Of a stretch of DNA of 64,000 bases, positions 935 through 13,835 are shown piece by piece. The notes below the pieces were generated by a model, which saw only the letters and a list, made by a program, of their open reading frames with translations, was not told the origin of the DNA and did not search any database. Positions within the stretch are counted from its first letter, which is position 1. Each line of letters opens with the position of its first letter. Made by a program: the position numbers and the translations under genes. The DNA lies in IMG/VR virus record IMGVR_UViG_3300042261_002385, positions 62,001 to 126,000 of that record; one strand, given 5' to 3'.

Positions 935-935
935 G

Positions 936-1005
936 TGCCGTGTATGAGGTTCGAACTCACTTAGCCCACCTTATGAGAGTAGGTTCTTTTCCACTAAGCC
1001 ACGGC
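936..1005 (-). tRNA. tRNA-Met/Ile2 (CAT), possibly degenerate
   Basis: GCCGTG/CACGGC acceptor, CTACT-CTCATAA-GGTGG anticodon arm, GTGAG-TTCGAAC-CTCAT T arm; positions 7-9 appear missing. Confidence 0.6.
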
Positions 1006-1011
1006 TTTTAT

Positions 1012-1338
1012 TTAATGACTATGTATTACATTTTCTATTTTCTCATACAGTTTTATTTTCGGTAATACACCAACTTGTCTATCAACTACTTCACCATTTT
1101 TAAAAAAGATTATTGTAGGAATTCCTCTTACCCCATATTTATCAGGACTGATTGGATTCTCATCAATGTTTACTTTATAAACCACAATTTTTTCTTCTAA
1201 ATCATTTGAAGCTTCTTCTAATGCTGGAGCTAATGCTTTACAAGGATTACACCAATCGGCCCAAAAATCGACTAAAATTAATTTATCTGAACTTTTAATT
1301 ATATCTTGAAAGTTATCATCTGTTATACTTGCTACCAT
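1012..1338 (-). CDS. trxA: Thioredoxin
   Basis: DFWADWCNPCK active site, GIPT motif. Confidence 0.92.
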   Translation of the reverse strand: MVASITDDNFQDIIKSSDKLILVDFWADWCNPCKALAPALEEASNDLEEKIVVYKVNIDENPISPDKYGVRGIPTIIFFKNGEVVDRQVGVLPKIKLYEKIENVIHSH

Positions 1339-1369
1339 ATCTAAATTTTTTCTTTTATATATTTAATTT

Positions 1370-1458
1370 TGGTACTTCTGGTCGGACTCGAACCGACACG
1401 GACACAATGTCCAAGGGATTTTAAGTCCCTCGCGTGCTACCAATTTCGCCACAGAAGC
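1370..1458 (-). tRNA. tRNA-Leu (TAA)
   Basis: AGGGA-CTTAAAA-TCCCT arm, long variable arm, encoded CCA. Confidence 0.93.
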
Positions 1459-1464
1459 TTGTTG

Positions 1465-1547
1465 TACCCTGGGAGAGACTCGAACTCTCACGCCTTTCGG
1501 CACCAGATCCTAAATCTGGCGTGTGCTACCAATTTCACCACCAAGGT
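1465..1547 (-). tRNA. tRNA-Leu (TAG)
   Basis: CCAGA-TTTAGGA-TCTGG arm, long variable arm. Confidence 0.93.
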
Positions 1548-1557
1548 AAGTAATTTG

Positions 1558-1631
1558 AGCATCCTGCCAGATTCGAACTGGCGTCTCTGGGTTACAAATC
1601 CAGAATAATTGACCAACTATACGAAGGATGC
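1558..1631 (-). tRNA. tRNA-Thr (TGT)
   Basis: GCATCCT/AGGATGC acceptor; CTGGA-TTTGTAA-CCCAG arm. Confidence 0.85.
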
Positions 1632-1638
1632 AATTTTG

Positions 1639-1712
1639 AGACACTGGTCGGATTCGAACCGACATACCACAGTTTTGCAGACTGGGACCTAAAGCCATTC
1701 AGACACAGTGTC
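1639..1712 (-). tRNA. tRNA-Cys (GCA)
   Basis: CAGT-CTGCAAA-ACTG arm, U73. Confidence 0.9.
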
Positions 1713-1718
1713 GTTTTG

Positions 1719-1793
1719 TTGGAATGATAGGACTTGAACCTACGACCTCCACGGTATCAGCGTGGCGCTCTCGACCAACTGAGCTACATTCCA
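1719..1793 (-). tRNA. tRNA-Ile (GAT)
   Basis: CCACG-CTGATAC-CGTGG arm. Confidence 0.92.
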
Positions 1794-1800
1794 ATTTTTG

Positions 1801-1865
1801 AGGTCAGTATGGGTCTCGAACCCATGACTCGCTTGCGTCCCACTATGAAGCCTTTTATAGTGACC
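1801..1865 (-). ncRNA. Short tRNA-like RNA or pseudo-tRNA without a recognisable anticodon arm
   Basis: GGTCA/TGACC acceptor and ATGGG-TTCGAGA-CCCAT T arm intact; middle part is not a cloverleaf. Confidence 0.5.
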
Positions 1866-1874
1866 AACCATTTG

Positions 1875-1945
1875 TACCCCGAAGTGGGTTCGAACCACTG
1901 CCATCTCCATGTAAAAGAGATACGCTACCATTACGCCATCGGGGC
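1875..1945 (-). tRNA. tRNA-Val (TAC)
   Basis: TCTCT-TTTACAT-GGAGA arm. Confidence 0.9.
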
Positions 1946-1953
1946 TTTTTTTG

Positions 1954-2025
1954 CGGACTGAGAGAATTACGATATCTCGACCTCAACCTTAACAGGGTTT
2001 TGCTCTGCCTCTGAGCTACCAGTCC
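1954..2025 (-). tRNA. tRNA-Asn (GTT), atypical T loop ATCGTAA
   Basis: AACC-CTGTTAA-GGTT arm, G73. Confidence 0.85.
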
Positions 2026-2030
2026 TTTTG

Positions 2031-2112
2031 TACCGAGAGAGAGACTCGAACTCTCACGCCTTTCGAACACCGGCTTCTTAGACCGGCGTGTCTACCATTC
2101 CACCACCTCGGC
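2031..2112 (-). tRNA. tRNA-Leu (AAG)
   Basis: CCGGT-CTAAGAA-GCCGG arm, long variable arm, A73. Confidence 0.9.
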
Positions 2113-2121
2113 ATTTATTCG

Positions 2122-2194
2122 TAGCTCCTACTGGATTCGAACCAGTATCTTCGCTTTAGAAGAGCGACGTCCTGTCCAATTGAACGAAGGAGCC
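2122..2194 (-). tRNA. tRNA-Arg (TCT)
   Basis: TCGCT-CTTCTAA-AGCGA arm. Confidence 0.9.
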
Positions 2195-2205
2195 ATATTA
2201 TTTTG

Positions 2206-2290
2206 TCGGTAGAGTGGGATTTGAACCCACGTCGTGATTTCTCACCTAGTGTATCAGACTAGTCCCTGAAGACCGCTCGGGTATCTACCG
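2206..2290 (-). tRNA. tRNA with Ile (GAT) anticodon and a long variable arm
   Basis: CGGTAGA/TCTACCG acceptor; CTAGT-CTGATAC-ACTAG arm; GTGA-GAAA-TCAC variable arm. Confidence 0.85.
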
Positions 2291-2824
2291 TAATCTTTCT
2301 AACCTTTTTTCTTCTTCTATATTATAATGTATTTCCCCATGGCAATTTCTACACACTAAAATACATTTATCAACTTCATTTTTTAATTTTTCAAAAGAAT
2401 GAGTTTTCCCACTTACTGAAAAATCTTTTTCTTTTGGGTTTCTATGATGAAATTCTAAAGATGATATACATTTATTATATCCACATAATTCACATTCACC
2501 ACCTTTATATTCAACTAGTCTAATCTTAACTCTTCTTCTCCATTCAATTACACTTTGAGAATTAGATTTTGATTCACTATAACTTCTATCTTTATACTTT
2601 TTGACAGTACTTATAGAAACGTTAAACTTTTCTGAAGCTTCTTTTATTGTATGTGTTTTACAATAGTTTTTTAACTCTTCTATATCAAATCTTCTTTCAG
2701 AATTTAATCCATATCTTTTACAATGATAACTAATTGTTGATTTTGATATGTTTAATTCTTTTTTTATTTCATCATAACTTTTACCTTCTTTTCTTAATTT
2801 TATTACTTTATCTTTAGTTTCCAT
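2285..2824 (-). CDS. HTH-containing HNH endonuclease (free-standing homing endonuclease-like)
   Basis: Two HTH-like segments, then CELCG...LEFHH...CILVCRNCHGEIH. Confidence 0.8.
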   Translation of the reverse strand: METKDKVIKLRKEGKSYDEIKKELNISKSTISYHCKRYGLNSERRFDIEELKNYCKTHTIKEASEKFNVSISTVKKYKDRSYSESKSNSQSVIEWRRRVKIRLVEYKGGECELCGYNKCISSLEFHHRNPKEKDFSVSGKTHSFEKLKNEVDKCILVCRNCHGEIHYNIEEEKRLERLR

Positions 2825-2888
2825 AGGTCTTAATTATTTTATGTTAAATATTAAAAATTAAAACCTTTTTAACCAAAGTGGTTAATTG

Positions 2889-2963
2889 CGGACTTGATAG
2901 GATTCGAACCTACTATCTTCTGCTTAACAGGCAGTAGCTTATGACCACTTAAGCTTCAAGTCC
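2889..2963 (-). tRNA. tRNA-Asn (GTT)
   Basis: CTGC-CTGTTAA-GCAG arm, G73. Confidence 0.9.
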
Positions 2964-2984
2964 TTTTATTAACTATATCAAAAC

Positions 2985-3015
2985 AAAAAACCCTCAGATT
3001 TTCATCTGAGGGTTC
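2985..3015 (-). terminator. Intrinsic terminator (attenuator 1) upstream of tRNA cluster 1
   Basis: GAACCCTCAGAT-GAAA-ATCTGAGGGTTT followed by a U tract. Confidence 0.9.
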
Positions 3016-3045
3016 GTGTTATATTTAGTTATTATACGTCACATT

Positions 3046-3159
3046 TTACGAGACAAATTTTCTAAATAGATAGGAACCCTCAGAAGGTCTAATATTACAT
3101 AACGTAATATTCACCACATTGAGTGTCAGGTTCATCATATTTGTCGTATTTGTTCTCAT
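3046..3159 (-). CDS. Leader peptide 1, MRTNTTNMMNLTLNVVNITLCNIRPSEGSYLFRKFVS
   Basis: 37-aa ORF; first 24 codons use only the amino acids of the cluster-1 tRNAs; contains TCTGAGGGTTC, complementary to the terminator 5' arm. Confidence 0.85.
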   Translation of the reverse strand: MRTNTTNMMNLTLNVVNITLCNIRPSEGSYLFRKFVS

Positions 3160-3216
3160 TGTTGTTATATATTATAAATTATTAGTCTCTTTTGACTTTT
3201 TTGTCATTATTTTATA

Positions 3217-3248
3217 CAAATTTAAATAAAAGTTTTAATTCTACCAAA
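3217..3248 (-). promoter_or_regulatory. Bacteroidota-type housekeeping promoter
   Basis: TTTG-N20-TAAATTTG upstream of leader 1. Confidence 0.75.
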
Positions 3249-3259
3249 TTTAATCTAAA

Positions 3260-4615
3260 TTATTTTACTGGTGTCTCAGTTTTTTCACCAGGCTTAGCAA
3301 CTTCTGGTTTTTCACCAGGTTTCACAGGTGTCTGTTCTACAGGTTTTTCACCAGGCTTAGTCTCACTTTCTTTATGACCAGGTTTCAAATGATGAATTGT
3401 GTGATAAACGTGATAAATAGCAAATCCTATAGCAGCAACTGTAAGTAAAACTTTTATTGTTTTTCCAATTGGATCAGTCTCAGCATACAAATTAAAAGCG
3501 GCTAAAAACCATTTTTTCATATCCATAGCTGCTTCCATTCCCGGAAAAGGTGTAGCTCCTACAAGTAAACAAACATCACCAACTATACCAACTAAAGCAC
3601 CTACAATAGCACCTAAAGCTACAAATTTGAATGGACCGGGTCCACCAGCCCATTTAGATATCTTAGAAACAAAAGTAAGAGAAGCGTTTGTAACAACTTC
3701 ACCTACTAGTTCTGCAACTTTAACAATCAGTCCAAAAAAAGAAGATAAAACTCTAAGAATAAGTCTTCCCCACCATATTAGTTTTTTTCCAGTAGTTACC
3801 TCAGCATCTGGACTTTTTTCAATAAAACTCTTAAACCAATCAAGTAAAGAGTCGAATGCTGAAGACTTAACAGCCTTCACAACCTCACCTTCTTTAAGTA
3901 GTTGATAATCATAAAAATGTTTGATTAAATCATCACTCTCCGTATGTTCAATATATGATGAACTTTCTTCTACCTGATTCTCTGTCTCTTGTAGTTCTTT
4001 AAGTGTGGTTGATTCTATATTTCCTTCTCCAGATTGTAATGTAGCTGAAACTTTATTACCTAAATTAGGATTTATTTGGTTAGATTGTAATGCATCTTTT
4101 TTTTCATCACCAGTTCTTAAAAAGTTAAAAACACTTTTCAAATTCGGAATTTCTTGTTCAACTGTTTTCTTATCAGTAGATTCAATTTTTTTAGCTATAG
4201 CATCTTTTTTATCAACAGATAGCTTCTTTCCAAGATTAAGAGCTCCATTTAACATCCCCAAGAAAACATTCTTACAAAAAGTCATGATACCTTTTACAAA
4301 CCAAGAAATACCATCAATAATTTTCTTAACACGCTCTTTAAATGAATTTACAAATTTCTCTCCTTTATCTTTGACATAAGCAACTGCTTTATCTAAAAAC
4401 TGCCATTCTTCTTTTAATAGGTTGAATTTGGATTCTAAAAGTTCATTTTGGATAAACTTTTTTTCAGTATTATCAAAAATTTCAGATTTTAAACATAAAT
4501 TCCAAAAATTATCTGACAGTTCTTCATAAATTTGACCTTTTATTATAGAAGCCTGTTTATTTGCATGTTTTTTTTGTTCTTTAACAAAAGATTTATAATT
4601 TCTTACATAACTCAT
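3260..4615 (-). CDS. Hypothetical membrane protein with C-terminal KPGEKP repeats
   Basis: Long ORF with hydrophobic C-terminal helices; ATG at 4615 preferred. Confidence 0.7.
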   Translation of the reverse strand: MSYVRNYKSFVKEQKKHANKQASIIKGQIYEELSDNFWNLCLKSEIFDNTEKKFIQNELLESKFNLLKEEWQFLDKAVAYVKDKGEKFVNSFKERVKKIIDGISWFVKGIMTFCKNVFLGMLNGALNLGKKLSVDKKDAIAKKIESTDKKTVEQEIPNLKSVFNFLRTGDEKKDALQSNQINPNLGNKVSATLQSGEGNIESTTLKELQETENQVEESSSYIEHTESDDLIKHFYDYQLLKEGEVVKAVKSSAFDSLLDWFKSFIEKSPDAEVTTGKKLIWWGRLILRVLSSFFGLIVKVAELVGEVVTNASLTFVSKISKWAGGPGPFKFVALGAIVGALVGIVGDVCLLVGATPFPGMEAAMDMKKWFLAAFNLYAETDPIGKTIKVLLTVAAIGFAIYHVYHTIHHLKPGHKESETKPGEKPVEQTPVKPGEKPEVAKPGEKTETPVK

Positions 4616-4653
4616 ATTTGTAAACAACTTTTTGTTATATATTAAATACCCGA

Positions 4654-4818
4654 TTTATTTTTCTGAGCCTTTAATAATTTCCAATTCTCAACATCTCTTT
4701 CCATAAACTTTCTTATCCTTTTAGAGAAATTCATTGAGTTTTCATCACAAAATTGTTTATATTCTTCTAATAATTTTTCAGGGATTCTAATTGAAATCAT
4801 TTTATCTTTGGTTGCCAT
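4654..4818 (-). CDS. Ribbon-helix-helix (CopG/Arc-like) DNA-binding protein, 54 aa (absent from the ORF track)
   Basis: MATKDKMISIRIPEKLLEEYKQFCDENSMNFSKRIRKFMERDV...: beta strand ISIRI plus two helices. Confidence 0.75.
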
Positions 4819-4866
4819 AAATTATACATTTTTATACATATATATCTTTGTATGGACATTCCCTCA

Positions 4867-5421
4867 CTAAATATCTCTCAAAAAGTTAAAATCGGTTATA
4901 TCAAGTTTTAATCCTATGTTAAATCTGTTGAAAAAATCAACTAGTTTTTGTAGACTTTTATCTTCGATAGCAAAAATCGTATGTGTTGGATCGAATTTCG
5001 AATTATAACTTGTGTCTTGTATAACATGAACGCCTTTTCTACTTATAGAAAACTCAGACGCCATCATATCTCCAAATGTTATATCAACATCTAATCTCAT
5101 ATTTGGTATGTAACTACCAGGACTTCTATCATAGTCAAAAGTTCCTGATTTTATCACAGTAGTCTGGTCAATATGTTGTTCACCAGAATCATCTTTGACT
5201 AGATAAATATCAATTTCTAAAGTATCAGGAGCTAACCATCTGTTTATATCATAAGAGATTTGTAACATATCAGAGTTCAACATTACATTTCCTTTCTTAT
5301 ATTCCAATCTATCAATTCCATATTCCTCACCTTTCAAAACAACAATTGTTTCAGGTAATAAAACTTCCCATTTAGGATCATAAATACTAATATTCTCATT
5401 GAATCTACGAAGATATTTCAT
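4867..5421 (-). CDS. Hypothetical phage protein
   Basis: ORF with MKYLRRFNE N-terminus. Confidence 0.7.
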   Translation of the reverse strand: MKYLRRFNENISIYDPKWEVLLPETIVVLKGEEYGIDRLEYKKGNVMLNSDMLQISYDINRWLAPDTLEIDIYLVKDDSGEQHIDQTTVIKSGTFDYDRSPGSYIPNMRLDVDITFGDMMASEFSISRKGVHVIQDTSYNSKFDPTHTIFAIEDKSLQKLVDFFNRFNIGLKLDITDFNFLRDI

Positions 5422-5425
5422 TGCA

Positions 5426-6163
5426 TTATTTTAATTTTATCAAAATTGGTAAATGGTCAGAAAGAGAATTTCTATTTCCTTTGTAAGGATAAACTAAAAC
5501 TTTGCTCTCGACAATTGTGTACTTTTTTTCAACAAAAAAATGATCATAATTATTTTCTGAAACAGAACCATCTCTTTTAAGAGACGTTCCTAAACCACAT
5601 AGTGGTGAATTAAAGTTTTTTAACATAGGAACATAAACTAGATGTTTACAGCTTAAATTGAAGTCTCCACAAATCAAACCATCGGTATATTGATATAATT
5701 TAGAAACTTCGTTTTGAGGAGTTTTGCTTGTTGGAACCAAATGAACTTCTCTAATCACTAAGTCTTTTTTATTAATTTTGAAAGACGCCACAAAAGGTTC
5801 TCTATCAATTGAGTCCTGTAAAGAAGCATCTAATTTAGAATAATTTAATGTTATTGATTTTCTATAAAGATAAGCATATCTTTCAGCACCTTCCCCTGTA
5901 GTTCTTGGTGAAATTACATAATTATAATCTAATATTTTTGCCATTTTCATAATACAAGAGTCACCATAAGGACCAGTGATGACCTCTTGAATAGCTACTA
6001 TGTCAGCACCTGATGATTTAATTACAGTTGTTAATCCAGTAATGACCGAATCTCTTTTAAATTTAGTTTCACCTAAATTTTGTATGTTCCAAGAAAGGAT
6101 TGTTTGTGAATAAGATATGTATGATAATAAGATAATTATAAATAAGAAAATGTTTTTCATCAA
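5426..6163 (-). CDS. Secreted endonuclease/exonuclease/phosphatase (DNase I-like)
   Basis: Signal peptide; SWNI, AIQEV, GDFN, YDH, SDHLP motifs. Confidence 0.9.
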   Translation of the reverse strand: MMKNIFLFIIILLSYISYSQTILSWNIQNLGETKFKRDSVITGLTTVIKSSGADIVAIQEVITGPYGDSCIMKMAKILDYNYVISPRTTGEGAERYAYLYRKSITLNYSKLDASLQDSIDREPFVASFKINKKDLVIREVHLVPTSKTPQNEVSKLYQYTDGLICGDFNLSCKHLVYVPMLKNFNSPLCGLGTSLKRDGSVSENNYDHFFVEKKYTIVESKVLVYPYKGNRNSLSDHLPILIKLK

Positions 6164-6176
6164 AAGTGTTTTCTTT

Positions 6177-6332
6177 CTATTTATTAATTTTCACATTTGA
6201 TTTTAATTTTCTTTTTAATCTTTTTATCATTTTAACTATTAAATCTTCTTTATCTTTTTTGTCTGATTCCAAATATCTAAAATTTCCTTTACTACTTTTA
6301 ATCTCACCTGTTATTATTACTCTTTCTTCCAT
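6177..6332 (-). CDS. Small hypothetical protein (51 aa)
   Basis: ATG-to-TAG ORF filling the gap in a minus-strand run. Confidence 0.5.
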   Translation of the reverse strand: MEERVIITGEIKSSKGNFRYLESDKKDKEDLIVKMIKRLKRKLKSNVKINK

Positions 6333-6347
6333 CTCATTAAATTTTTT

Positions 6348-6530
6348 TTATATAAAACCTTTTATTGTATTATTTTCTATTCTGAACACTACAAAATCTT
6401 CTAATTTACATTTGTTTAAAATGTCACTTTGGTCTAATACCTTACCCTGAGGAAAAGCAGTAAGTGAACCATCAACATTTTTGTAGATGATATAAAGCTT
6501 ACTATCTGATTTTCTTTTAAAGATTGTCAT
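6348..6530 (-). CDS. Small hypothetical protein
   Basis: ORF track. Confidence 0.55.
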   Translation of the reverse strand: MTIFKRKSDSKLYIIYKNVDGSLTAFPQGKVLDQSDILNKCKLEDFVVFRIENNTIKGFI

Positions 6531-6547
6531 TCATTATATTATTTTTG

Positions 6548-6620
6548 AGCGAGAGATGAGGTTCGAACTCACGACCCCCACCTTGGCAAGGTGGCGCTCT
6601 ACCAGCTGAGCTACTCTCGC
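6548..6620 (-). tRNA. tRNA-Gly (GCC)
   Basis: CCACC-TTGCCAA-GGTGG arm, U73. Confidence 0.93.
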
Positions 6621-6630
6621 TTATTTGATG

Positions 6631-6706
6631 TGGACCAGATGGGAATCGAACCCACCACACCTACCTTGCAAGGGTAAGTCGCCGAAGCCTTGGAACATGC
6701 TAGCCC
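6631..6706 (-). tRNA. tRNA-Ala (TGC)
   Basis: G3:U70 pair; TTACC-CTTGCAA-GGTAG arm; atypical D arm. Confidence 0.88.
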
Positions 6707-6710
6707 GTAG

Positions 6711-6782
6711 TGCGGGTAACCAGAATCGAACTGACATCACCGACTTGGAAGGCCGGTGTAATAACCATTATACGATACCCGC
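6711..6782 (-). tRNA. tRNA-Gly (TCC)
   Basis: CCGGC-CTTCCAA-GTCGG arm. Confidence 0.92.
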
Positions 6783-6793
6783 ATGTATTTCTG

Positions 6794-6874
6794 TCGGCAA
6801 GGTGGGATTCGAACCCACGTTTTCAACTTCCCGCTACGTGTATAGAATGTATAAGATTCCAACGGTACTTGCCG
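6794..6874 (-). tRNA. Non-canonical tRNA-like RNA with a TAT (Ile AUA) anticodon-like loop
   Basis: Perfect CGGCAAG/CTTGCCG acceptor and T arm; GGAAT-CTTATAC-ATTCT hairpin sits where the D arm should be. Confidence 0.6.
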
Positions 6875-6875
6875 A

Positions 6876-6909
6876 AATAAAAAAACCCAGTCCTTTTGAG
6901 ACTGGGTTT
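6876..6909 (-). terminator. Intrinsic terminator (attenuator 2)
   Basis: AAACCCAGTCT-CAAAA-GGACTGGGTTT plus U tract, directly upstream of cluster 2. Confidence 0.88.
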
Positions 6910-6930
6910 ATAAATATGTAAAGTCAAATA

Positions 6931-7014
6931 TTACATAACATAACTCAGTCTATAGACTTGACGCCCCGCGCCTGTCGCTATAAATCCAACTGATATGTTT
7001 GTAAAATTTTTCAT
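6931..7014 (-). CDS. Leader peptide 2, MKNFTNISVGFIATGAGRQVYRLSYVM
   Basis: ATA, GGA, ATA, GCG, GGC, GCG, GGG control codons; AGACTGAGTT antiterminator. Confidence 0.78.
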   Translation of the reverse strand: MKNFTNISVGFIATGAGRQVYRLSYVM

Positions 7015-7067
7015 TGTTTCTATTATATTTGTTATATATAAAAAGTTTTATTTCTTCTTTTATTTTG

Positions 7068-7150
7068 TTGGAAGGGAGGGATTCGAACCCCCGTACTCGT
7101 AAGAGAACAGATTTACAGTCTGTCGGTTTTAGCCACTCACCCACCTTCCA
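7068..7150 (-). tRNA. tRNA-Tyr (GTA)
   Basis: ACAGA-CTGTAAA-TCTGT arm, long variable arm. Confidence 0.93.
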
Positions 7151-7161
7151 ATAAAGCTTTG

Positions 7162-7233
7162 TAGTCCATACGGGAATCGAACCCGTCTCTCCACCGTGAA
7201 AGGGTGGTGTCCTAGCCGATAGACGAATGGACC
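7162..7233 (-). tRNA. tRNA-Glu (TTC)
   Basis: CCACC-CTTTCAC-GGTGG arm. Confidence 0.93.
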
Positions 7234-7252
7234 GTTTATCTGTTTTGTTTTA

Positions 7253-7284
7253 CAAAGATAAGGTAACTTTTCTAATCTACCAAA
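7253..7284 (-). promoter_or_regulatory. Bacteroidota-type promoter between attenuator 3 and tRNA-Glu
   Basis: TTTG-N20-TATCTTTG. Confidence 0.7.
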
Positions 7285-7293
7285 TCTTTAAAT

Positions 7294-7323
7294 AAAAAAA
7301 CCCAATCTTTTCAGACTGGGTTT
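7294..7323 (-). terminator. Intrinsic terminator (attenuator 3)
   Basis: AAACCCAGTCT-GAAA-AGATTGGGTTT plus U tract. Confidence 0.88.
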
Positions 7324-7343
7324 GTTAAAAGTAAATCAAATAT

Positions 7344-7415: not shown

Positions 7416-7436
7416 GCTTTGATTAATTATTTTTAG

Positions 7437-7509
7437 TAGCGGGGGTAGGACTCGAACCTACGACCTCTAGGTTATGAGCCTAGCGAGCTACCAACTACTC
7501 CACCCCACA
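7437..7509 (-). tRNA. Initiator-type tRNA-fMet (CAT)
   Basis: U1:U72 mismatch, fMet-like D arm, CTAGG-CTCATAA-CCTAG arm. Confidence 0.88.
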
Positions 7510-7593
7510 ATGTGTTATTGTATGTGTATATATAAAAAAAGTTTTCTCTATTTCTTTATTTTAAAGGATTTTTCAACTTAATATATAATTTGT

Positions 7594-8061: not shown

Positions 8062-8459
8062 AACACTTAAAAAAGATATTTGAAAGTAGTGAAGATGATA
8101 AAAGATACATCGAAGAATGTTTCTTAGAGATATCAGAGAATCCAAACTTCGAAGTTGATGATTTACTTGAAGTAGAATTGACCGAAAAAGTAGATTATCC
8201 AATTTCAGTATATAAATTACACATAGAATTTGGTAAAAATATAAGTTTACCTAATCCAGTAAATTCTAATCTTTATATTGGAATGGTAAAAACTGATTTA
8301 GATTTCTTAAGAATGAAGAATGAAAAAATATCCGAGTTATTAAATGATATTGAAGTTGCTATAAATAGAGTTGGCGAAAAATTTCCTAATTCAGAATGTC
8401 AAATCTATGCGAATAGAAGAGAAGAGATTGATATAGTAATAATTGTAAAAAATAATTAA
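8058..8459 (+). CDS. Hypothetical phage protein
   Basis: ORF with MKHLKKIFES N-terminus. Confidence 0.7.
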   Translation: MKHLKKIFESSEDDKRYIEECFLEISENPNFEVDDLLEVELTEKVDYPISVYKLHIEFGKNISLPNPVNSNLYIGMVKTDLDFLRMKNEKISELLNDIEVAINRVGEKFPNSECQIYANRREEIDIVIIVKNN

Positions 8460-8464
8460 ATATT

Positions 8465-8830
8465 ATGGAAAGACCGCAAACAAGAATTATAGACCAACAA
8501 CACGTTGAATCAGAAAGAGAAGTTACTGGATGGGAAGCGGAACAAATACTAAGAAAATACGGACACGAACCTAAACACTATTCATCAATTCCAGGTAACA
8601 CACCTCAGAGTCCTAATCATAATTTAACTTTTGAAGAAATGATTGCACAAGAAGAAGCTAAACGTAAAGAGGAAATGATGAGAAATCAACAACAAATGAA
8701 TGGTCCTAAACCATTGACTTTTGATGGCGGCCGTGGTTATGATTCTGAGATTAGGTATTCGACTGATGAAGATACTGGATTTGGTTTTAAGATTGAGATA
8801 TCTACTGATATGAAAATTCCAAAATATTAA
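8465..8830 (+). CDS. Hypothetical protein
   Basis: ORF track. Confidence 0.65.
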   Translation: MERPQTRIIDQQHVESEREVTGWEAEQILRKYGHEPKHYSSIPGNTPQSPNHNLTFEEMIAQEEAKRKEEMMRNQQQMNGPKPLTFDGGRGYDSEIRYSTDEDTGFGFKIEISTDMKIPKY

Positions 8831-9435
8831 ATCTTTTGAAAAACTACAATATCATCGATTTGAATTTTCTTTACACCTTGTAATTCTGTAAGAACTCCAT
8901 GTAGGCCTAATCCAGCGTTTTTGTTTTCAATAAGAATTGAACCCGGTGCAATCTCTGAAATAATCTTATTATATAACAGTGTAAGTTTTTCAGTTGTCTT
9001 GAAAGGAGTATAGGTATAGACAATGTTATATTTGGAATAGTCTTGATTCATTATATCATCTTCAATTACAGTAAGATTACTATCCCAATATTGAAGAAGT
9101 TTTTCGTTTAGAAAATCAATATAAACTTTTTGTTTCTCAATTCCATAGAATTTAAAAGTCTTACCATCTTCAAATAATTTTGACTGTTGATACATATCAA
9201 AAAGAGCTGTTCCTAATCCTATTCCACAATCACAAATATGATTTTCTTGTAGTAGTAATCCTCTTTCTTCAAGTCTCTGAAGAAGAAATATATTTAATTC
9301 AATATTAGATAGAACATAGTGCCACTCTTCATTTTGGATAAACTCTGGTTTTGAACTATCAAAATCAGTCCAAAGAGTTTTAGAATCCTGAAAATATTTG
9401 ACTAAGTTTTCATTCGGTGTAACTTCTTGTGCCAT
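8827..9435 (-). CDS. Class I SAM-dependent methyltransferase-like protein
   Basis: ICDCGIGLG motif I, GIE, DDI; paralog at 43335. Confidence 0.7.
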   Translation of the reverse strand: MAQEVTPNENLVKYFQDSKTLWTDFDSSKPEFIQNEEWHYVLSNIELNIFLLQRLEERGLLLQENHICDCGIGLGTALFDMYQQSKLFEDGKTFKFYGIEKQKVYIDFLNEKLLQYWDSNLTVIEDDIMNQDYSKYNIVYTYTPFKTTEKLTLLYNKIISEIAPGSILIENKNAGLGLHGVLTELQGVKKIQIDDIVVFQKI

Positions 9436-9519
9436 ATAAGTTATATCTATTTTTATATTTAAGTTGTCTATAAAAGAACTCTCTAAAGATAATATATAGT
9501 GTATAAAATAATTTATCTA

Positions 9520-12423
9520 ATGAGCAGTATAGCTTTTGGTAGCACATATTCTTTTTTAACTGCAGCTACGCCATCATCTGGATGGATCATTGGTTTTGAT
9601 ACAGATGGTGTATTAAAGCAAATTGACACATCTGGAAACATTATACTAATAGGTGGTGGACCTACTGCTGGAAATTTAGCAACATATTCTATTTCACAAG
9701 TCTTAACTGTTGGTAATAATACTCAGAATCGTTCCATTATTATGGGAACAGCTACTAACATCAAAAGTGCAAACGGCGGTGGTAAAATTGAGTTAGACCG
9801 TTTAAGTGGAACAAATTCAGTTTTAATATCGACTGATGATAGTTCACAATCTGAAAGTTACTTATTGATGAGGAATGATTATGCAAGACTGTCTACTGAT
9901 TCATCTAAACAGATGATTGATTTGAATAAAACTGATAATGACCTGCGAATTTATAATAACAATGCTGGGTCAATATCAATAGGAGTAGATACAGGTTCTT
10001 TAGTTTACGGCCAGCTAGATGAAATTAAGATATCTTATAACTCTTCATCAACAGCTTCTACTGGTAATTTTGATAAAAATGCCGTTTTAATTGGTTCAAA
10101 AAACTCAAAAATACTTTCAGGAGTTGTTAACACAGTAGTTTTAGGAGGTCAAAATTTTACCGCCTCTAATTCGAATTCAATTTATGTTCCGGATATTTAT
10201 TTACAAAATCAAAAAGGAATAAAGTCGACTAATACAAATGAAGTATTCTATTTGAATGATAATAACGGATACACATTGTTGGACAGAAACTCAGGTAACT
10301 TAGATAATTCTTGGTTACTTATGGCAACTGACTATAATTCTACTTATCAAGCTTATGTTGAAATTGGTGTAAACTCAGACTCCGGATATGGAAATGATTC
10401 TCAAATCTATATCTATAACTCTAAAGGACCATCATATAGTTATCAAGCATATTCAAGTATTACTGTCGGTAAAAATCTTCTTAGATTTGCTTCTCAAGAT
10501 GTCGATGGTGGGTTAGATACAGTTAGAATAAATTTATCAGCTGGTAATTCTATAACTGTTGATGGATCGACTTCTTCTTTTAAAGGTATGGAGTATAATG
10601 ATGATTATTCTCTAAATTTTGTGACACATTCACTTGTAGATAAACAATATGTAGATAGTCAATTTACAGGATTTAATTTAGATGTTGTCCTAGCAGCTGG
10701 AAATAACTCACAGGCTAACGACATCGTTATGGGCACAGCTACAAGTATAAAATCAGCTAATGGTGGAGGTCAAATAGATTTAGACTTATCAGGAAATGCT
10801 GATGAAGTTGTAATATCAACAGATGGTGGAGCTCAAGCAGAATCATTTATTTCTTTGACTGCAACTGACTTATTAATTCAATCAGTTGGTAATATAACTT
10901 TGGATGGTCAAGGTCTAAGAGCATCATCAAACGACTCTTTAGGTATTGTATATCAAGCTGATTATTCGGCTACTTTTATAACACAATCATTAGTGAATAA
11001 AGGATATGTAGACTCAGGAACATCTTCTTTATGGTCAGCAATAAACTCAATTAATACTGATTATATCTCAGAAATAATACCTGGGACAGGTCTTACAGGC
11101 GGTGGAACTTATGGAACGATAAACATAGATATTGAGATAGGTAATGGTTTACAATTTGTAACTAACTCGATTTCATTAGGTGGAACTCTTTCACAAGATA
11201 CAATCATAATAGGAGATTCATTTAATTTCACTTTAGATGAATTAACAAACATAAGTTTAAGTGCGTCTGGAATCATTGACAATTATGCAACAGACTTGTC
11301 GGGATTCTTCGGAGAAACTTATTTAGATTCAAATGTTTTTGAGGCTAAAGTAGGAACCATACATGGTAACACATTTTCGAGAGTAGTAATTCAGAATCAC
11401 GTTTTACTTCTTGAAAACCAAAATGAAATCGGAGATTCGACTAGTTACGGTTTATACTTAAACGAACAAACTATTGGTGACGGTTCAACTGATAATAGAT
11501 TAATAATTAATGACGAAGTTTCTCAGAAAGGTTTAGTTTACTCACAAGATTATACATCTAATTTCACAACATATTCATTAGTTAGTAAAGGATATGCTGA
11601 TTCTTTATTAAGTAGAGTTGAAAATGGTTTAACACAGAGTCCAAACGGAAATATTATGTTAGGTGGAAGTCTGAACACAGCAGTTGTAATTGAAGGATTT
11701 ACTAATAATGTGTATTTCTCAGACGTTGGTAGATTTTCAGTAACTGCGTCTGGTTTTATAGACAAAATGGTTTACGCACCGTCAACAAATACTAGTCAAC
11801 AATTTAATAATGGTGACCAATACTACACAAGAGTGGATGATGCTTTAGGAACTTATTCACTAATAAATTTAGATCCGAGTAGAGTAGATGTTGAAAATTT
11901 AGGTGACGATGGATACCTTACTAAATTCACTATATATTCATCTGGTCAGAGTATAGGTGACCAATCGTCAAATAATAGATTTATAGTGACTGATGATAGT
12001 TATCAAAAAGGAATAGTTTATTCTGATGACTACACTGCAAACTTTACTACTTACTCATTAGTTACTAAACAATATGTTGATTCAAAAAAACCGTATAAAG
12101 TTTATGTAGCTCTTCTTAAACAATCCGGAACCTCAGCACCAACAGATATTGTATTAGAGAACACCTTTGGAATAACAGCTACTTTTAGCTACACTACAAC
12201 AGGTAATTACGAGTTGTATATGACAGGTCAATTTACTTATCAAAAAACATACATAGTAAATGGAATTGCTGATCAAAACCCAATAGGTGGGGATTTTGCC
12301 TTATTTGCAACTCAATACTTTAATACTGATAAAATAATACTTACTACCCAAGATATAGGTGGAACTGGACCAATGAACGGTTTACTAAACGACACATCAA
12401 TTGAAATCAGAGTGTATCCGTAA
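9520..12423 (+). CDS. Repeat-rich virion fibre/adhesin-like protein
   Basis: Four DYxxxFxTxSLVxKxY(V/A)DS repeats and duplicated MGTATxIKSANGGG modules. Confidence 0.65.
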   Translation: MSSIAFGSTYSFLTAATPSSGWIIGFDTDGVLKQIDTSGNIILIGGGPTAGNLATYSISQVLTVGNNTQNRSIIMGTATNIKSANGGGKIELDRLSGTNSVLISTDDSSQSESYLLMRNDYARLSTDSSKQMIDLNKTDNDLRIYNNNAGSISIGVDTGSLVYGQLDEIKISYNSSSTASTGNFDKNAVLIGSKNSKILSGVVNTVVLGGQNFTASNSNSIYVPDIYLQNQKGIKSTNTNEVFYLNDNNGYTLLDRNSGNLDNSWLLMATDYNSTYQAYVEIGVNSDSGYGNDSQIYIYNSKGPSYSYQAYSSITVGKNLLRFASQDVDGGLDTVRINLSAGNSITVDGSTSSFKGMEYNDDYSLNFVTHSLVDKQYVDSQFTGFNLDVVLAAGNNSQANDIVMGTATSIKSANGGGQIDLDLSGNADEVVISTDGGAQAESFISLTATDLLIQSVGNITLDGQGLRASSNDSLGIVYQADYSATFITQSLVNKGYVDSGTSSLWSAINSINTDYISEIIPGTGLTGGGTYGTINIDIEIGNGLQFVTNSISLGGTLSQDTIIIGDSFNFTLDELTNISLSASGIIDNYATDLSGFFGETYLDSNVFEAKVGTIHGNTFSRVVIQNHVLLLENQNEIGDSTSYGLYLNEQTIGDGSTDNRLIINDEVSQKGLVYSQDYTSNFTTYSLVSKGYADSLLSRVENGLTQSPNGNIMLGGSLNTAVVIEGFTNNVYFSDVGRFSVTASGFIDKMVYAPSTNTSQQFNNGDQYYTRVDDALGTYSLINLDPSRVDVENLGDDGYLTKFTIYSSGQSIGDQSSNNRFIVTDDSYQKGIVYSDDYTANFTTYSLVTKQYVDSKKPYKVYVALLKQSGTSAPTDIVLENTFGITATFSYTTTGNYELYMTGQFTYQKTYIVNGIADQNPIGGDFALFATQYFNTDKIILTTQDIGGTGPMNGLLNDTSIEIRVYP

Positions 12424-12424
12424 G

Positions 12425-12510
12425 CGGAGAGCAGAATACTCGAAACCCATGCAATTGAACGCACCCAACGCTTTCCAGGCGTGACTGATGACCTCATCAG
12501 TTTACTCTCC
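12425..12510 (-). tRNA. tRNA-Ser (GGA), 8/4 fold
   Basis: ACGC-CTGGAAA-GCGT arm; 8-bp acceptor, 7-bp D stem with 4-nt loop, 4-bp T stem. Confidence 0.82.
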
Positions 12511-12517
12511 AATTTAG

Positions 12518-12603
12518 CGGAGAACAGAGGAATTGAACCCCACACAAATGAACGTGCAACTCGCTTAGCAGGCGGTCCTAATCACCAGATTAGTTTATTC
12601 TCC
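12518..12603 (-). tRNA. tRNA-Ser (GCT), 8/4 fold
   Basis: CGC-CTGCTAA-GCG; CTAATC-TGGT-GATTAG D arm; G73. Confidence 0.82.
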
Positions 12604-12609
12604 ATTTAG

Positions 12610-12693
12610 CGGAAGAAGTAGGTGTCGATCCCAATACCTTTCAGTACCCACAGTTTTCAAGACTGGGTTGCAGGCCGCTGCAATTCATCTTCC
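12610..12693 (-). tRNA. tRNA-Ser (TGA), 8/4 fold
   Basis: CAGT-CTTGAAA-ACTG; TTGCAG-CGGC-CTGCAA D arm; G73. Confidence 0.82.
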
Positions 12694-12699
12694 AATTTG

Positions 12700-12772
12700 T
12701 GGTTCTAGAAGTATTCGAAACCTCACTTGATCGTTCGTAGCGACCTGTCCTGTCCAATTAGACGATAGAACC
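12700..12772 (-). tRNA. tRNA-Arg (ACG)
   Basis: GGTCG-CTACGAA-CGATC arm. Confidence 0.9.
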
Positions 12773-12780
12773 AAATTTAA

Positions 12781-12908
12781 CGGGGATGGTTGGACTCGAA
12801 CCAACGACCTTATAATTTCAAAATATACGAAGTAACTCTTTCAATCAACACTCTTACGAGGTAAAGTTTCAAAAGAGATAGTTTTCTCTACCACTGAGCT
12901 AAATCCCC
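12781..12908 (-). ncRNA. 128-nt tRNA-like RNA with a large structured insertion in the anticodon domain
   Basis: Near-canonical acceptor, D arm (GCTCAGTGGTAGAG) and T arm (GTTGG-TTCGAGT-CCAAC) flank about 55 extra nt. Confidence 0.7.
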
Positions 12909-12919
12909 AATAACATTTG

Positions 12920-12994
12920 TGACTCCGGTGGGACTCGAACCCACATATCCCTGATTAAGAGTCAGGTCCGGAAACCAATTACGGATACGAAGTC
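12920..12994 (-). tRNA. tRNA-Lys (CTT)
   Basis: CCTGA-CTCTTAA-TCAGG arm. Confidence 0.88.
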
Positions 12995-12999
12995 ATTTG

Positions 13000-13087
13000 T
13001 GCACCCAGAAGGACTCGAACCTTCAACGGACTTTCGTCTACCCCTCGCATTAAAAGTGCGATGCTCTACCAATTGAGCCATAGGTGC
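13000..13087 (-). tRNA. tRNA-Lys (TTT) with long variable arm
   Basis: TCGCA-CTTTTAA-TGCGA arm; 20-nt variable region containing GAC-GAAA-GTC. Confidence 0.85.
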
Positions 13088-13100
13088 TTAATTACCTTAG

Positions 13101-13173
13101 TGACCCCGGCGAGAATCGAACTCGCGACCCCCTGGTTAAAAGCCAGGTGCTCTACCTACTAAGCTACGAAGTC
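13101..13173 (-). tRNA. tRNA-Lys (TTT)
   Basis: CCTGG-CTTTTAA-CCAGG arm. Confidence 0.93.
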
Positions 13174-13216
13174 AAATTTTTTCTATGTGATGACTTATAA
13201 CTTAGTAAGCCATCAC

Positions 13217-13240
13217 TTAGCGTTTTCGTTTAGTTTCCAT
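13217..13240 (-). CDS. Candidate mini leader ORF METKRKR
   Basis: ATG GAA ACT AAA CGA AAA CGC TAA after an A-rich tract, followed by an 11-bp hairpin, upstream of the Lys/Arg tRNAs. Confidence 0.45.
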   Translation of the reverse strand: METKRKR

Positions 13241-13258
13241 TTTCTTTTTTATTTTTAG

Positions 13259-13329
13259 CACGTCGCCTAGGAATTGAACCCAGCCATCGAGGTTTTGGAG
13301 ACCTGACCGACACCTTGTCTGTGCGACGT
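13259..13329 (-). tRNA. tRNA-Trp (CCA), short D arm
   Basis: AGGT-CTCCAAA-ACCT arm, G73. Confidence 0.82.
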
Positions 13330-13336
13330 ATGTTTG

Positions 13337-13410
13337 GGTGAACGACGGGTTACGATCCCGCTACCTCTGGCTTCACAAACCAGCACTCTTCCGATTGAGC
13401 TACATTCACC
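13337..13410 (-). tRNA. tRNA-His (GTG)
   Basis: G-1:C73 pair; CTGGT-TTGTGAA-GCCAG arm; T loop ATCGTAA. Confidence 0.9.
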
Positions 13411-13415
13411 ATATA

Positions 13416-13487
13416 AACCCCACTTCACCAGGTTAACGGACTGGCTGCCATATGGGAGTGGGGGTCTCCTGTTATTCCAGGACTCCG
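13416..13487 (-). ncRNA. GC-rich structured RNA of unknown class, 3' of tRNA-Phe
   Basis: TCCTG/CAGGA, CCCCACT/AGTGGGG and CCAG/CTGG stems; possible ACGGA/TCCGT pseudoknot; strand inferred from context. Confidence 0.5.
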
Positions 13488-13560
13488 TGGAATGGGTGGG
13501 TATCGAGCCCACTCCTCTGGATTTTCAGTCCAGCGCAATTACCTAATCTGCCACCATTCC
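13488..13560 (-). tRNA. tRNA-Phe (GAA)
   Basis: CTGGA-CTGAAAA-TCCAG arm. Confidence 0.9.
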
Positions 13561-13573
13561 AATTTTTTTAAAT

Positions 13574-13607
13574 AAAAAAACCCGAACTTCTTTCGAGGTT
13601 CGGGTTT
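13574..13607 (-). terminator. Intrinsic terminator (attenuator 4)
   Basis: AAACCCGAACCTC-GAAA-GAAGTTCGGGTTT plus U tract. Confidence 0.9.
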
Positions 13608-13630
13608 AAATTATATTGTCTTTTATAAGT

Positions 13631-13732
13631 TTACACTTCTAAATTTGAGCAATACTCTTTTAGTACCGAACCAGTGGTGCTAAACCACGAAGTCGATTTA
13701 CTAAATGTGCTATGTTTGCGAATTGCTCTCAT
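13631..13732 (-). CDS. Leader peptide 4, MRAIRKHSTFSKSTSWFSTTGSVLKEYCSNLEV
   Basis: R/K/H/S/F/W-rich control region; GGTTCGG antiterminator. Confidence 0.85.
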   Translation of the reverse strand: MRAIRKHSTFSKSTSWFSTTGSVLKEYCSNLEV

Positions 13733-13789
13733 TTTTTTTATATATTGAATTGTTAAACTCTCTTTTTAAATTATTGTCATTATTCTATA

Positions 13790-13821
13790 CAAATGTAGAT
13801 AAAAGTTTTTAATCTACCAAA
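13790..13821 (-). promoter_or_regulatory. Bacteroidota-type promoter upstream of leader 4
   Basis: TTTG-N20-TACATTTG; closely similar to 3217-3248. Confidence 0.75.
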
Positions 13822-13835
13822 TTTTTTTGAAATTT

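Follow-up and report, generated by a model that had tools for sequence, protein, structure and literature searches.

Codon-matched leader ORFs and terminators as candidate attenuators of tRNA gene clusters in a giant Bacteroidota phage

All four minus-strand tRNA clusters in a 64-kb stretch of a giant Bacteroidota phage (hereafter the window, positions 62,001 to 126,000 of IMG/VR record IMGVR_UViG_3300042261_002385) are preceded by a short leader ORF and a strong intrinsic terminator. The leader codons are those read by the tRNAs encoded just downstream, suggesting that the phage senses which tRNAs are short and makes more of exactly those. This arrangement had been proposed in an initial annotation, made from sequence alone, as leader-peptide attenuation of tRNA clusters. 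Our computational analysis confirms the observation and supports the interpretation, although translation of the leaders and stall-dependent read-through are inferred. Literature searches found no earlier description of this use of attenuation.

ARAGORN identified 22 tRNAs on the minus strand between positions 1370 and 13560. Relaxed ARAGORN and Rfam searches added Met-cat (933-1008), Ala-tgc (6630-6706), Ile-tat (6793-6874), Trp-cca (13258-13329) and three Ser genes (12426-12689). The four strongest minus-strand terminators within positions 1-16000 are exactly those in front of the clusters (3015-2988, 6909-6883, 7323-7298 and 13607-13578), and only these four of the 12 strong terminators in the whole 64 kb have a 12-45 codon ORF ending just upstream. 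Each unit comprises an ATG ORF of 23-37 codons, a spacer of 20-30 nt and a terminator with a stem of 11-13 bp plus a U tract. The first tRNA follows after 8-25 nt, or after 64 nt for the Glu/Tyr cluster. The features, all on the minus strand, are as follows.

3217..3248 (-), Bacteroidota sigma-A-type promoter of unit 1 (TTTG, 20 nt, TAaaTTTG)
3046..3159 (-), leader ORF L1, 37 codons (37 aa), with codons 2-24 drawn only from M/R/T/N/L/V/I/C codons; region 1 at 3133-3121, an invariant tip hairpin at 3111-3091 and region 2 (the antiterminator strand) at 3084-3074
2980..3015 (-), intrinsic terminator of unit 1 (12-bp stem, tetraloop, U tract), whose 5' arm pairs with 3084-3074 in transcripts cut before the 3' arm
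933..2963 (-), tRNA cluster 1: Asn, [HNH ORF], Ile-gat (86 nt), Arg-tct, Leu-aag, Asn, Val-tac, tRNA-like remnant, Ile-gat, Cys, Thr-tgt, Leu-tag, Leu-taa, [thioredoxin], Met-cat
7436..7509 (-), tRNA-Met with no leader, upstream of L3
7344..7415 (-), leader ORF L3, 23 codons (23 aa), with control run YYYEaE; region 2 at about 7366-7356
7290..7323 (-), intrinsic terminator of unit 3
7253..7284 (-), promoter-like site (TTTGGTAGA ... TAtcTTTG) between the L3 terminator and tRNA-Glu
7067..7233 (-), tRNA cluster 3: Glu-ttc, Tyr-gta
6931..7014 (-), leader ORF L2, 27 codons (27 aa), with control codons ATA, GGA, ATA, GCG, GGC, GCG, GGG; region 2 at 6951-6943; no promoter of its own, read through from cluster 3
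6875..6909 (-), intrinsic terminator of unit 2
6547..6874 (-), tRNA cluster 2: Ile-tat, Gly-tcc, Ala-tgc, Gly-gcc
13790..13821 (-), sigma-A-type promoter of unit 4 (TTTG, 20 nt, TAcaTTTG)
13631..13732 (-), leader ORF L4, 33 codons (33 aa), with control codons for R(CGC), K, H, S, F and W; region 1 at 13705-13691, tip hairpin at 13688-13674, region 2 at 13672-13666
13570..13607 (-), intrinsic terminator of unit 4
12426..13560 (-), tRNA cluster 4: Phe, His, Trp, Lys-ttt x2, Lys-ctt, tRNA-like gene with an insert, Arg-acg, Ser-tga, Ser-gct, Ser-gga

The promoter motif family occurs only three times in 64 kb, all in the tRNA region, and is conserved upstream of 35 of 51 leaders. Several details nonetheless depart from the initial annotation, which had assigned the same upstream layout and matching control codons to all four clusters. 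The promoter-like site at 7284-7253 leaves cluster 3 only partly gated; this site is also present in L014, an entry in our numbered collection of leaders from relatives, but the other Y/E-class units lack it. The tRNA-Met at 7509-7436 has no leader, and a Met-cat gene likewise lies just upstream of the Y/E-class leader in L014, L018 and L020, and upstream of a class-1 leader in L007. In addition, L4 has four Thr codons and L2 has Ser/Val/Phe/Thr codons with no cognate tRNA downstream. Finally, the Met tRNA of cluster 1 is a weak call that lies beyond a thioredoxin gene.

The apparent codon match prompted statistical comparison of leaders with clusters. Within the window, codons decodable by the leader's own cluster numbered 25/36 for L1 (background 0.315, p=3e-6), including every one of codons 2-24, 15/32 for L4 (p=0.002 to 0.007) and 7/26 for L2 (p=0.018). 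In contrast, L3 yielded 5/22 (p=0.1 for the whole ORF), but as a YYYEaE run. Off-diagonal pairings were at or below background. Across eight leader classes and eight clusters, using whole leaders, the true pairing was the single best of 40,320 permutations, with a Fisher combined p of about 1e-14. The match is also specific to reading frame: in-frame triplets were 50.1% concordant versus 11.8% and 12.5% in the other two frames and 17% for in-frame codons after region 2, and frame 0 was the best frame in 51 of 52 leaders. At the isoacceptor level, 143 of 186 informative codons were decodable against 103.8 expected (z=6.5). ATT accompanies Ile-gat and ATA accompanies Ile-tat, whereas AGA goes with Arg-tct; CGC and CGT go with Arg-acg although they make up 1% and 7% of Arg codons in the window's ORFs. 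These statistics carry the qualifications that orthologous leaders are not independent data points and that several tRNA calls rely on relaxed thresholds and assumed wobble rules.

To evaluate whether leader content tracks tRNA content, we collected 52 distinct leaders from >630-kb megaphages and IMG/VR jumbo contigs. All share the order of ATG ORF, 17-33 nt, strong terminator and first tRNA. The ATG is invariant in alignments A1 and A2, and the same holds for all 52 leaders. The terminator-to-tRNA distance is 6-26 nt in nearly all; gaps of about 95-120 nt hold tRNA-like genes that ARAGORN did not call, while a few gaps of about 35-65 nt (e.g. L005, L015, L020) and one of 235 nt (L002) remain unexplained. 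When clusters split, fuse or nest, the leaders are recoded to match. A cluster of Asn/Ile/Val/Cys/Thr tRNAs alone has a leader with only N/T/V/I/C control codons, and the separated Arg-tct plus Leu cluster has an L/R-rich leader. Likewise, a fused Tyr/Glu/Ile-tat/Gly/Ala cluster has the control run IEAIGYAYEAG, Arg-acg plus Ser clusters have S/R leaders, Gln/Pro/Asp clusters have PQPQDQD, and a Gln-Gln cluster has QFQQQQ. The initial annotation had predicted a D/Q/P-rich leader elsewhere from the absence of Asp, Gln and Pro tRNAs here. The predicted leader was found in four relatives, one of which lies on the same IMG/VR contig as a class-1 leader that differs from the window's at two of 37 residues. 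Furthermore, the cultured Cellulophaga phage phi4:1, whose host Cellulophaga baltica is also in culture, has three such units with diagonal p values of 0.0014, 0.06 and 0.004 and depleted off-diagonal pairings.

Structural modelling was undertaken to understand how leader and terminator might interact. In all four window leaders, a 3' segment of the ORF (region 2) pairs with the 5' arm of the terminator. In folds of truncated transcripts, a modelled ribosome on the control codons leaves that pairing intact, and one placed beyond them abolishes it. ORF-to-arm duplexes beat dinucleotide shuffles at p<=0.05 in 34 of 52 leaders, and the pairing covaries across relatives, as in GATTCGA/TCGAATC, ATCCGA/TCGGAT and GTTCGA/TCGAAC in the R/S class and GAATCTGGGTT/AACCCAGATTC in L007. 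Concordance peaks 4-11 codons before region 2 and collapses at codons -2 to 0 relative to it; concordant codons stop 3-4 codons before the antiterminator segment, about the reach of a ribosome footprint. Region 2 can also pair back onto the control codons, at about codons 8-16 in 33 of 52 leaders and in the minimum-free-energy folds of L1 and L4, but this helix is only moderately conserved, with 55-81% of cells paired on a MAFFT alignment. In L1 and L4 a ribosome at the stop codon no longer covers region 2, and termination then depends on the region 1:2 helix re-forming. Equilibrium folds of the full transcripts always give the terminator, so the switch has to be kinetic. The L1 region is 80% and 71% identical in DNA to two megaphages, whereas a 974-aa protein encoded in the same window region matches those phages at only about 30% identity, and the 3' part of L4 is conserved as DNA but in another reading frame in LR745206.

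Overall, we consider it likely that these elements are ribosome-mediated transcription attenuators. In this model, transcription starts at a host-type promoter or arrives by read-through from the preceding cluster, and the leader is translated while RNA polymerase moves toward the terminator. Codons about 5-20 are those read by the downstream tRNAs, and many are codons the phage itself rarely uses. If any is decoded slowly, the ribosome stalls on region 1 and region 2 is free to pair with the 5' arm of the terminator, which cannot form, and the cluster is transcribed. If all are read quickly, the ribosome runs over region 2 or, in the longer leaders, region 2 re-pairs with region 1 behind the ribosome; either way the terminator forms and transcription stops a few bases before the first tRNA. 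The output would be the very tRNAs that relieve the stall, making each unit a negative-feedback loop that holds the supply of its own isoacceptors at a set point. Against this, a stalled ribosome cannot tell a missing tRNA from an uncharged one, and amino-acid starvation would therefore induce tRNA synthesis that does not help. Tandem units are nested, as an upstream leader also carries codons for tRNAs behind the next attenuator.

Alternative accounts appear unlikely, to differing degrees. The least improbable retains the switch but changes its signal, from tRNA abundance to amino-acid charging, a developmental timer in which clusters are on before any phage tRNA exists and are then shut off, or induction only on depletion of particular tRNAs by host anticodon nucleases or tRNA degradation. 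A stall reports on the aminoacyl-tRNA ternary complex rather than on tRNA as such, as established for trp and his attenuation, and control codons are often rare, G/C-ending codons, which fits sensing of species that the host supplies poorly. Sequence cannot separate these inputs. However, making more tRNA does not relieve amino-acid starvation, so starvation is an unlikely selected signal. The opposite polarity, in which efficient leader translation promotes read-through and stalling causes termination to give positive feedback, is doubtful. Stop codons lie only 17-33 nt from the terminator stem, bringing a terminating ribosome close to the hairpin, but at this distance its edge rarely reaches the stem, and a ribosome that has passed the control codons covers the antiterminator, not the terminator.

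An RNA that works without translation, either by binding tRNAs directly through codon-like triplets as a multi-specifier analogue of the T-box or as a small RNA gene with its own terminator, is similarly improbable. The nucleotide sequence is very strongly conserved, with an invariant core, and its 3' part is constrained as RNA rather than as peptide. Nevertheless, the concordant triplets lie in a single frame that starts at a conserved ATG and ends at a stop, no T-box or any other Rfam family matches (a search of positions 1-16000 at E<=1 gave no T-box hit), and a run of 10-20 contiguous specifiers has no precedent. Finally, the hairpins might be insulators or processing sites between tRNA sub-operons and the ORFs chance occurrences, which are common in AT-rich DNA, or unrelated micro-peptides. 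The permutation, frame and isoacceptor statistics and the recoding of leaders argue against this reading, as does the distance of only 6-26 nt between most terminators and the first tRNA, which leaves no room for a promoter.

The proposed mechanism mirrors the leader-peptide attenuators of the enterobacterial trp, his, leu, thr, ilvGMEDA and pheA operons, in which a short ORF carries codons for the regulated pathway, ribosome position decides among mutually exclusive 1:2, 2:3 and 3:4 helices (the 1:2 helix being less certain here), and an intrinsic terminator lies just before the first gene; the thr and ilv leaders already mix two or three amino acids. Here the regulated genes are tRNAs rather than enzymes, so the product would act directly on the sensor. 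The leaders encode up to eight amino acids and discriminate between isoacceptors by codon choice, units are chained and nested within one tRNA array, and the elements occur in phages of Bacteroidota, whose ribosomes do not use Shine-Dalgarno pairing. The E. coli pheST attenuator likewise applies this logic to the translation apparatus, but controls a protein (a synthetase), uses a single amino acid and is a cellular gene. T-box riboswitches also couple terminator/antiterminator choice to the state of a specific tRNA and regulate genes of tRNA charging, but bind one uncharged tRNA directly through a specifier codon and the T-box sequence without a ribosome, whereas the signal here is frame-dependent. 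Work on the large tRNA arrays of big phages, as codon-usage compensation or as replacements for host tRNAs lost to degradation or anticodon nucleases, appears to treat these genes as passively expressed; in our model each sub-array carries a demand sensor.

As far as literature searches indicate, this would be the first case of tRNA genes controlled by the decoding activity of their own products, a direct feedback loop inside the translation apparatus. Each leader would provide a compact, recodable sensor of isoacceptor-specific decoding speed, useful for studying tRNA-targeting defences and for synthetic biology. A broader reading, which we regard as only slightly more likely than not, is that phage tRNA arrays are not passive cargo but are divided into independently metered units, each leader acting as a translated table of contents and an OR-gate over up to eight amino acids and specific isoacceptors. 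The phage would thereby top up only those tRNAs whose decoding has become limiting, for example after host tRNA decay or anticodon-nuclease defence, with nested attenuators giving hierarchical control along one array and a modular design recoded repeatedly by duplication across Bacteroidota phages from 145 kb to more than 640 kb. The order and grouping of phage tRNAs would reflect regulatory units, and because the leader predicts the contents of a cluster, it can help annotate aberrant tRNAs that gene finders miss.

All tRNA genes of the 64-kb window lie on the minus strand between 933 and 13560, where ARAGORN at default settings called 22 genes. Relaxed ARAGORN and Rfam searches added further genes in the remaining slots of the arrays, namely Met-cat at 933-1008, Ala-tgc at 6630-6706, Ile-tat at 6793-6874, Trp-cca at 13258-13329 and three Ser genes at 12426-12689. 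The four strongest minus-strand terminator-like hairpins in 1-16000 sit just upstream of the four clusters. In the whole window there are only 12 strong terminators, and only these four have a 12-45 codon ATG ORF ending 12-40 nt upstream. The window is 100% identical to parts of IMG/VR contig IMGVR_UViG_3300042261_002385, which is 436 kb long.

Leader ORFs and terminator-like hairpins preceding the four tRNA clusters
3159-3046, minus strand, leader ORF L1, 37 aa
3015-2988, minus strand, terminator-like hairpin of cluster 1
7014-6931, minus strand, leader ORF L2, 27 aa
6909-6883, minus strand, terminator-like hairpin of cluster 2
7415-7344, minus strand, leader ORF L3, 23 aa
7323-7298, minus strand, terminator-like hairpin of cluster 3
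13732-13631, minus strand, leader ORF L4, 33 aa
13607-13578, minus strand, terminator-like hairpin of cluster 4

L1 and L4 each have a Bacteroidota-type promoter about 55 nt upstream of the ATG, consisting of TTTG, 20 nt and then TAnnTTTG. This promoter family occurs only three times in the window, and the third copy, a promoter-like site at 7284-7253, lies between the L3 terminator and tRNA-Glu. In contrast, L2 has no promoter and must be reached by read-through from the Glu/Tyr cluster. A further motif, TTAATATATAA, is followed 2-9 nt later by ATG and precedes both leaders and ordinary protein genes, occurring in the window at 7578 (+), 15278 (+) and 55568 (-) and lying 4-7 nt upstream of the ATG in 40 of 51 leaders. 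This motif may be a phage promoter that gives nearly leaderless mRNAs, or a translation-initiation signal. Interestingly, it also occurs about 20 nt before a tRNA-Met (7436-7509, minus strand), the only tRNA with no attenuator in front of it. A tRNA-Met lies just upstream of the Y/E-class leader here and in the relatives L014, L018 and L020, and upstream of a class-1 leader (the class of L1) in the relative L007.

The arrays also contain other genes and several oddities:
2285-2824, minus strand, a 179-aa ORF with helix-turn-helix and weak HNH endonuclease matches, inside cluster 1 between the first tRNA-Asn and the rest; it overlaps the 86-nt tRNA by 6 nt and looks like a homing endonuclease inserted in the array
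1012-1338, minus strand, a thioredoxin gene (Pfam E=9e-33) inside the cluster-1 transcription unit, between tRNA-Leu-taa and the weak tRNA-Met-cat at 933-1008
2205-2290, minus strand, an 86-nt tRNA with a long variable arm but an Ile-gat anticodon, which is also the first gene of the cluster in the relatives L004 and L010
1794-1873, minus strand, a degenerate tRNA-like remnant
13410-13486, minus strand, a 77-nt spacer between Phe and His with no tRNA call
12780-12909, minus strand, a tRNA-like gene with good acceptor, D and T arms but an insert of about 55 nt in the anticodon region; a similar sequence is present in a relative, upstream of the R/S leader in L016
6568-6682, minus strand, a weak Rfam match to the Y RNA-like family YrlA (34 bits against a gathering score of 69, E=2.5e-4) overlapping the aberrant tRNA-Ala-like gene and tRNA-Gly, which is probably just tRNA-likeness

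To evaluate whether the correspondence between leader codons and downstream anticodons exceeds chance, we applied ordinary wobble rules and took the codon usage of the window's long ORFs as background. All cross-pairings were at or below background.

Leader codons decodable by the leader's own tRNA cluster
L1: 25/36 (background 0.315), including all of codons 2-24; p = 3e-6
L4: 15/32; p = 0.002 to 0.007
L2: 7/26; p = 0.018
L3: 5/22, as the run YYYEaE; p = 0.1

Relatives supplied four further leader classes (R/S, fused Y/E/I/G/A, Q/P/D and Q/Q), and in the resulting 8 x 8 matrix of whole leaders against clusters the true pairing was the single best of all 40,320 permutations, with a Fisher-combined binomial p of about 1e-14. 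Over 52 distinct leaders, in-frame triplets between codon 2 and the antiterminator segment were 50.1% concordant, compared with 11.8% and 12.5% for the other two frames and 17% for in-frame codons after that segment, and frame 0 was the best frame in 51 of 52 leaders. The match also held at the level of isoacceptors, with 143 of 186 informative codons decodable against 103.8 expected (z=6.5). Clusters with only Ile-gat have ATT 18 times and ATA once, while clusters with only Ile-tat have ATA 12 times, ATT once and ATC twice. Similarly, Arg-acg clusters use CGC and CGT, which make up 1% and 7% of Arg codons in the window's ORFs, and Arg-tct clusters use AGA. Many control codons are among the rarest in the phage, including CTG, CTC, AGC, GGG, GGC, ACG, TCG, GTG and GCG.

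Folding studies were undertaken to search for alternative RNA structures. Equilibrium folds of full-length leader transcripts returned the terminator whatever ribosome position was modelled and were uninformative, so we folded transcripts that end before the terminator's 3′ arm. In all four leaders, the 5′ arm paired with a segment inside the ORF (region 2), at nt 75-85 in L1, nt 63-72 in L2, nt 51-60 in L3 and nt 60-66 in L4. A modelled ribosome footprint on the control codons (region 1) left this 2:3 helix intact, whereas a footprint placed beyond them removed it. The full L1 and L4 folds also contain a 1:2 helix between the control codons and the same ORF segment, capped by a small hairpin that in L1 lies within a core that is invariant in nine sequences. 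Pair counts on a MAFFT alignment understate the 2:3 helix, because L007 is misaligned, and the 1:2 helix, because two subgroups differ in region 1, and per-sequence duplex tests were therefore used instead. Across the 52 leaders, the ORF-to-arm duplex beat dinucleotide-shuffled ORFs at p<=0.05 in 34 cases, where about 2.6 would be expected by chance, and the ORF segment paired back onto codons about 8-16 in 33 cases. An ungapped complement search misplaced region 2 in a few leaders (L3 of the window, L014 and the Q/P/D leader of the relative L005), and these were re-examined by folding and by eye.

The antiterminator pairing covaries across relatives. In the R/S class, GATTCGA is found with TCGAATC, ATCCGA with TCGGAT and GTTCGA with TCGAAC, and in class 4 (the class of L4) GGTTCGG, AACTTGG and GATTCGA each match their own terminator arm. 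L007 has GAATCTGGGTT with AACCCAGATTC, where the window has TCTGAGGGTTC with GAACCCTCAGA. Concordance peaks 4-11 codons before the antiterminator segment and collapses over the last two codons, a distance that is about what a ribosome covers downstream of its A site.

A near-identity search of the whole region against the phage collection returned only tRNA hits plus one leader hit. The L1 region is 80% and 71% identical in DNA to the megaphages LR745206 and LR756502, and L4 is 75% identical to LR745206. A 974-aa protein encoded in the same window region matches these phages at only about 30% identity. Both phages are >630-kb genomes from a subsurface site and a lake (PMC9723777). Pattern scans of IMG/VR, together with the two megaphage records, gave 52 distinct leaders, every one of which has the same order of parts with 17-33 nt between the stop codon and the terminator stem; a generic motif scan of IMG/VR returned 120 loci that were mostly chance matches and of which only 15 held real units. 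In the relatives L011, L012, L018, L020, L056 and L063, the 95-120 nt between the terminator and the first called tRNA hold tRNA-like genes that ARAGORN does not call, with His-GTG or Tyr-GTA anticodon loops and inserts, and the leader content could help to annotate them.

Leader content follows cluster content in relatives
Asn, Ile, Val, Cys, Thr tRNAs only: N/T/V/I/C codons only
Arg-tct plus four Leu (split off): rich in L and R
Tyr, Glu, Ile-tat, Gly, Ala (fused): IEAIGYAYEAG
Arg-acg plus Ser: S/R leaders
Gln, Pro, Asp: PQPQDQD
Gln, Gln: QFQQQQ

Where two units are in tandem, the upstream leader also keeps codons for the tRNAs behind the second attenuator, as seen for class 4 before R/S, R/L before N/I/V/C/T, and Y/E before I/G/A. 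The Q/P/D leader is the one predicted by the initial annotation, which had expected a D/Q/P-rich leader elsewhere in the genome. One copy (L118) lies on the same contig as L010, whose class-1 leader differs from the window's at two of 37 residues. However, a pattern search recovered only three loci from other contigs and no Q/P/D unit from the window's own genome, and the prediction is therefore verified in relatives but not in this genome itself.

We also identified a cultured example. The 23-tRNA array of Cellulophaga phage phi4:1 (NC_021788.1) is cut by three terminators, each preceded by a short ORF, and all off-diagonal pairings between these leaders and clusters are depleted.

Leader units of Cellulophaga phage phi4:1 (control run; downstream tRNAs; diagonal p)
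QRLHLQELEQP; Pro, Glu, Gln, His, Leu, Leu, Arg-acg; 0.0014
TKTGITVIDKTKGARA (inside annotated gp075, with a GTG or TTG start); Ala, Lys, Ile, Gly, Met, Asp, Thr, Val, Arg-tct, Met; 0.06
NYCTYNNSNWSFSY; Tyr, Ser, Ser, Asn, Trp, Phe; 0.004

The annotated hypothetical protein gp075 (39 aa, 17990-18109) is one of the leader peptides; it has no in-frame ATG, so it would start at TTG or GTG, and the 38 nt upstream are duplicated in front of the first leader of the array. The 5′ arm pairs with an ORF segment in the folds of two of the three units. For the third (unit A), a GGGAGG stretch in the ORF that could pair with the arm was noted by eye only, and the fold did not show it. The design is therefore not confined to one megaphage clade, and an experimental system exists.

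Alternative readings of these elements were also considered. The possibility that the leaders are conserved functional peptides was rejected because the 3′ part of L4 is conserved as DNA but is read in a different frame in LR745206, and is therefore constrained as RNA, not as peptide. As for promoters downstream of the terminators, promoter-like sites in this position are present only in the Y/E units of the window and L014. No Rfam family matches the leaders, and the element does not conform to the sequence-level criteria of a T-box, whereas it does conform to those of a leader-peptide attenuator, although the 1:2 helix is only moderately conserved. Its closest relatives are the trp, his, leu, thr, ilv and pheA attenuators and, as a translation-apparatus target, pheST. 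What is new here is that the target is tRNA genes, that the leaders are multi-amino-acid and isoacceptor-specific, that the units are nested, and that the setting is a phage. Full-text searches, which did not cover all journals and so cannot exclude an earlier report, found no description of attenuators in front of tRNA genes or phage tRNA arrays.

Overall, the anatomy, statistics and covariation seen in the sequence point to classical ribosome-mediated attenuation as the most likely mechanism, with translation, stalling and feedback inferred. In this model, a ribosome slowed on any control codon occupies region 1, leaving region 2 free to pair with the terminator's 5′ arm, and RNA polymerase reads into the tRNAs. 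A ribosome that is not slowed covers region 2 or, in the longer L1 and L4 leaders, region 2 instead re-pairs with region 1 behind the ribosome; either way the terminator forms. The switch must be kinetic, some control-region codons have no cognate tRNA downstream, and a stall cannot distinguish a missing tRNA from an uncharged one. Because the products are the tRNAs that read the control codons, the circuit is inferred to be a negative-feedback loop on decoding capacity for each group of isoacceptors, and the use of rare codons suggests that the sensor is tuned to species the host supplies poorly.
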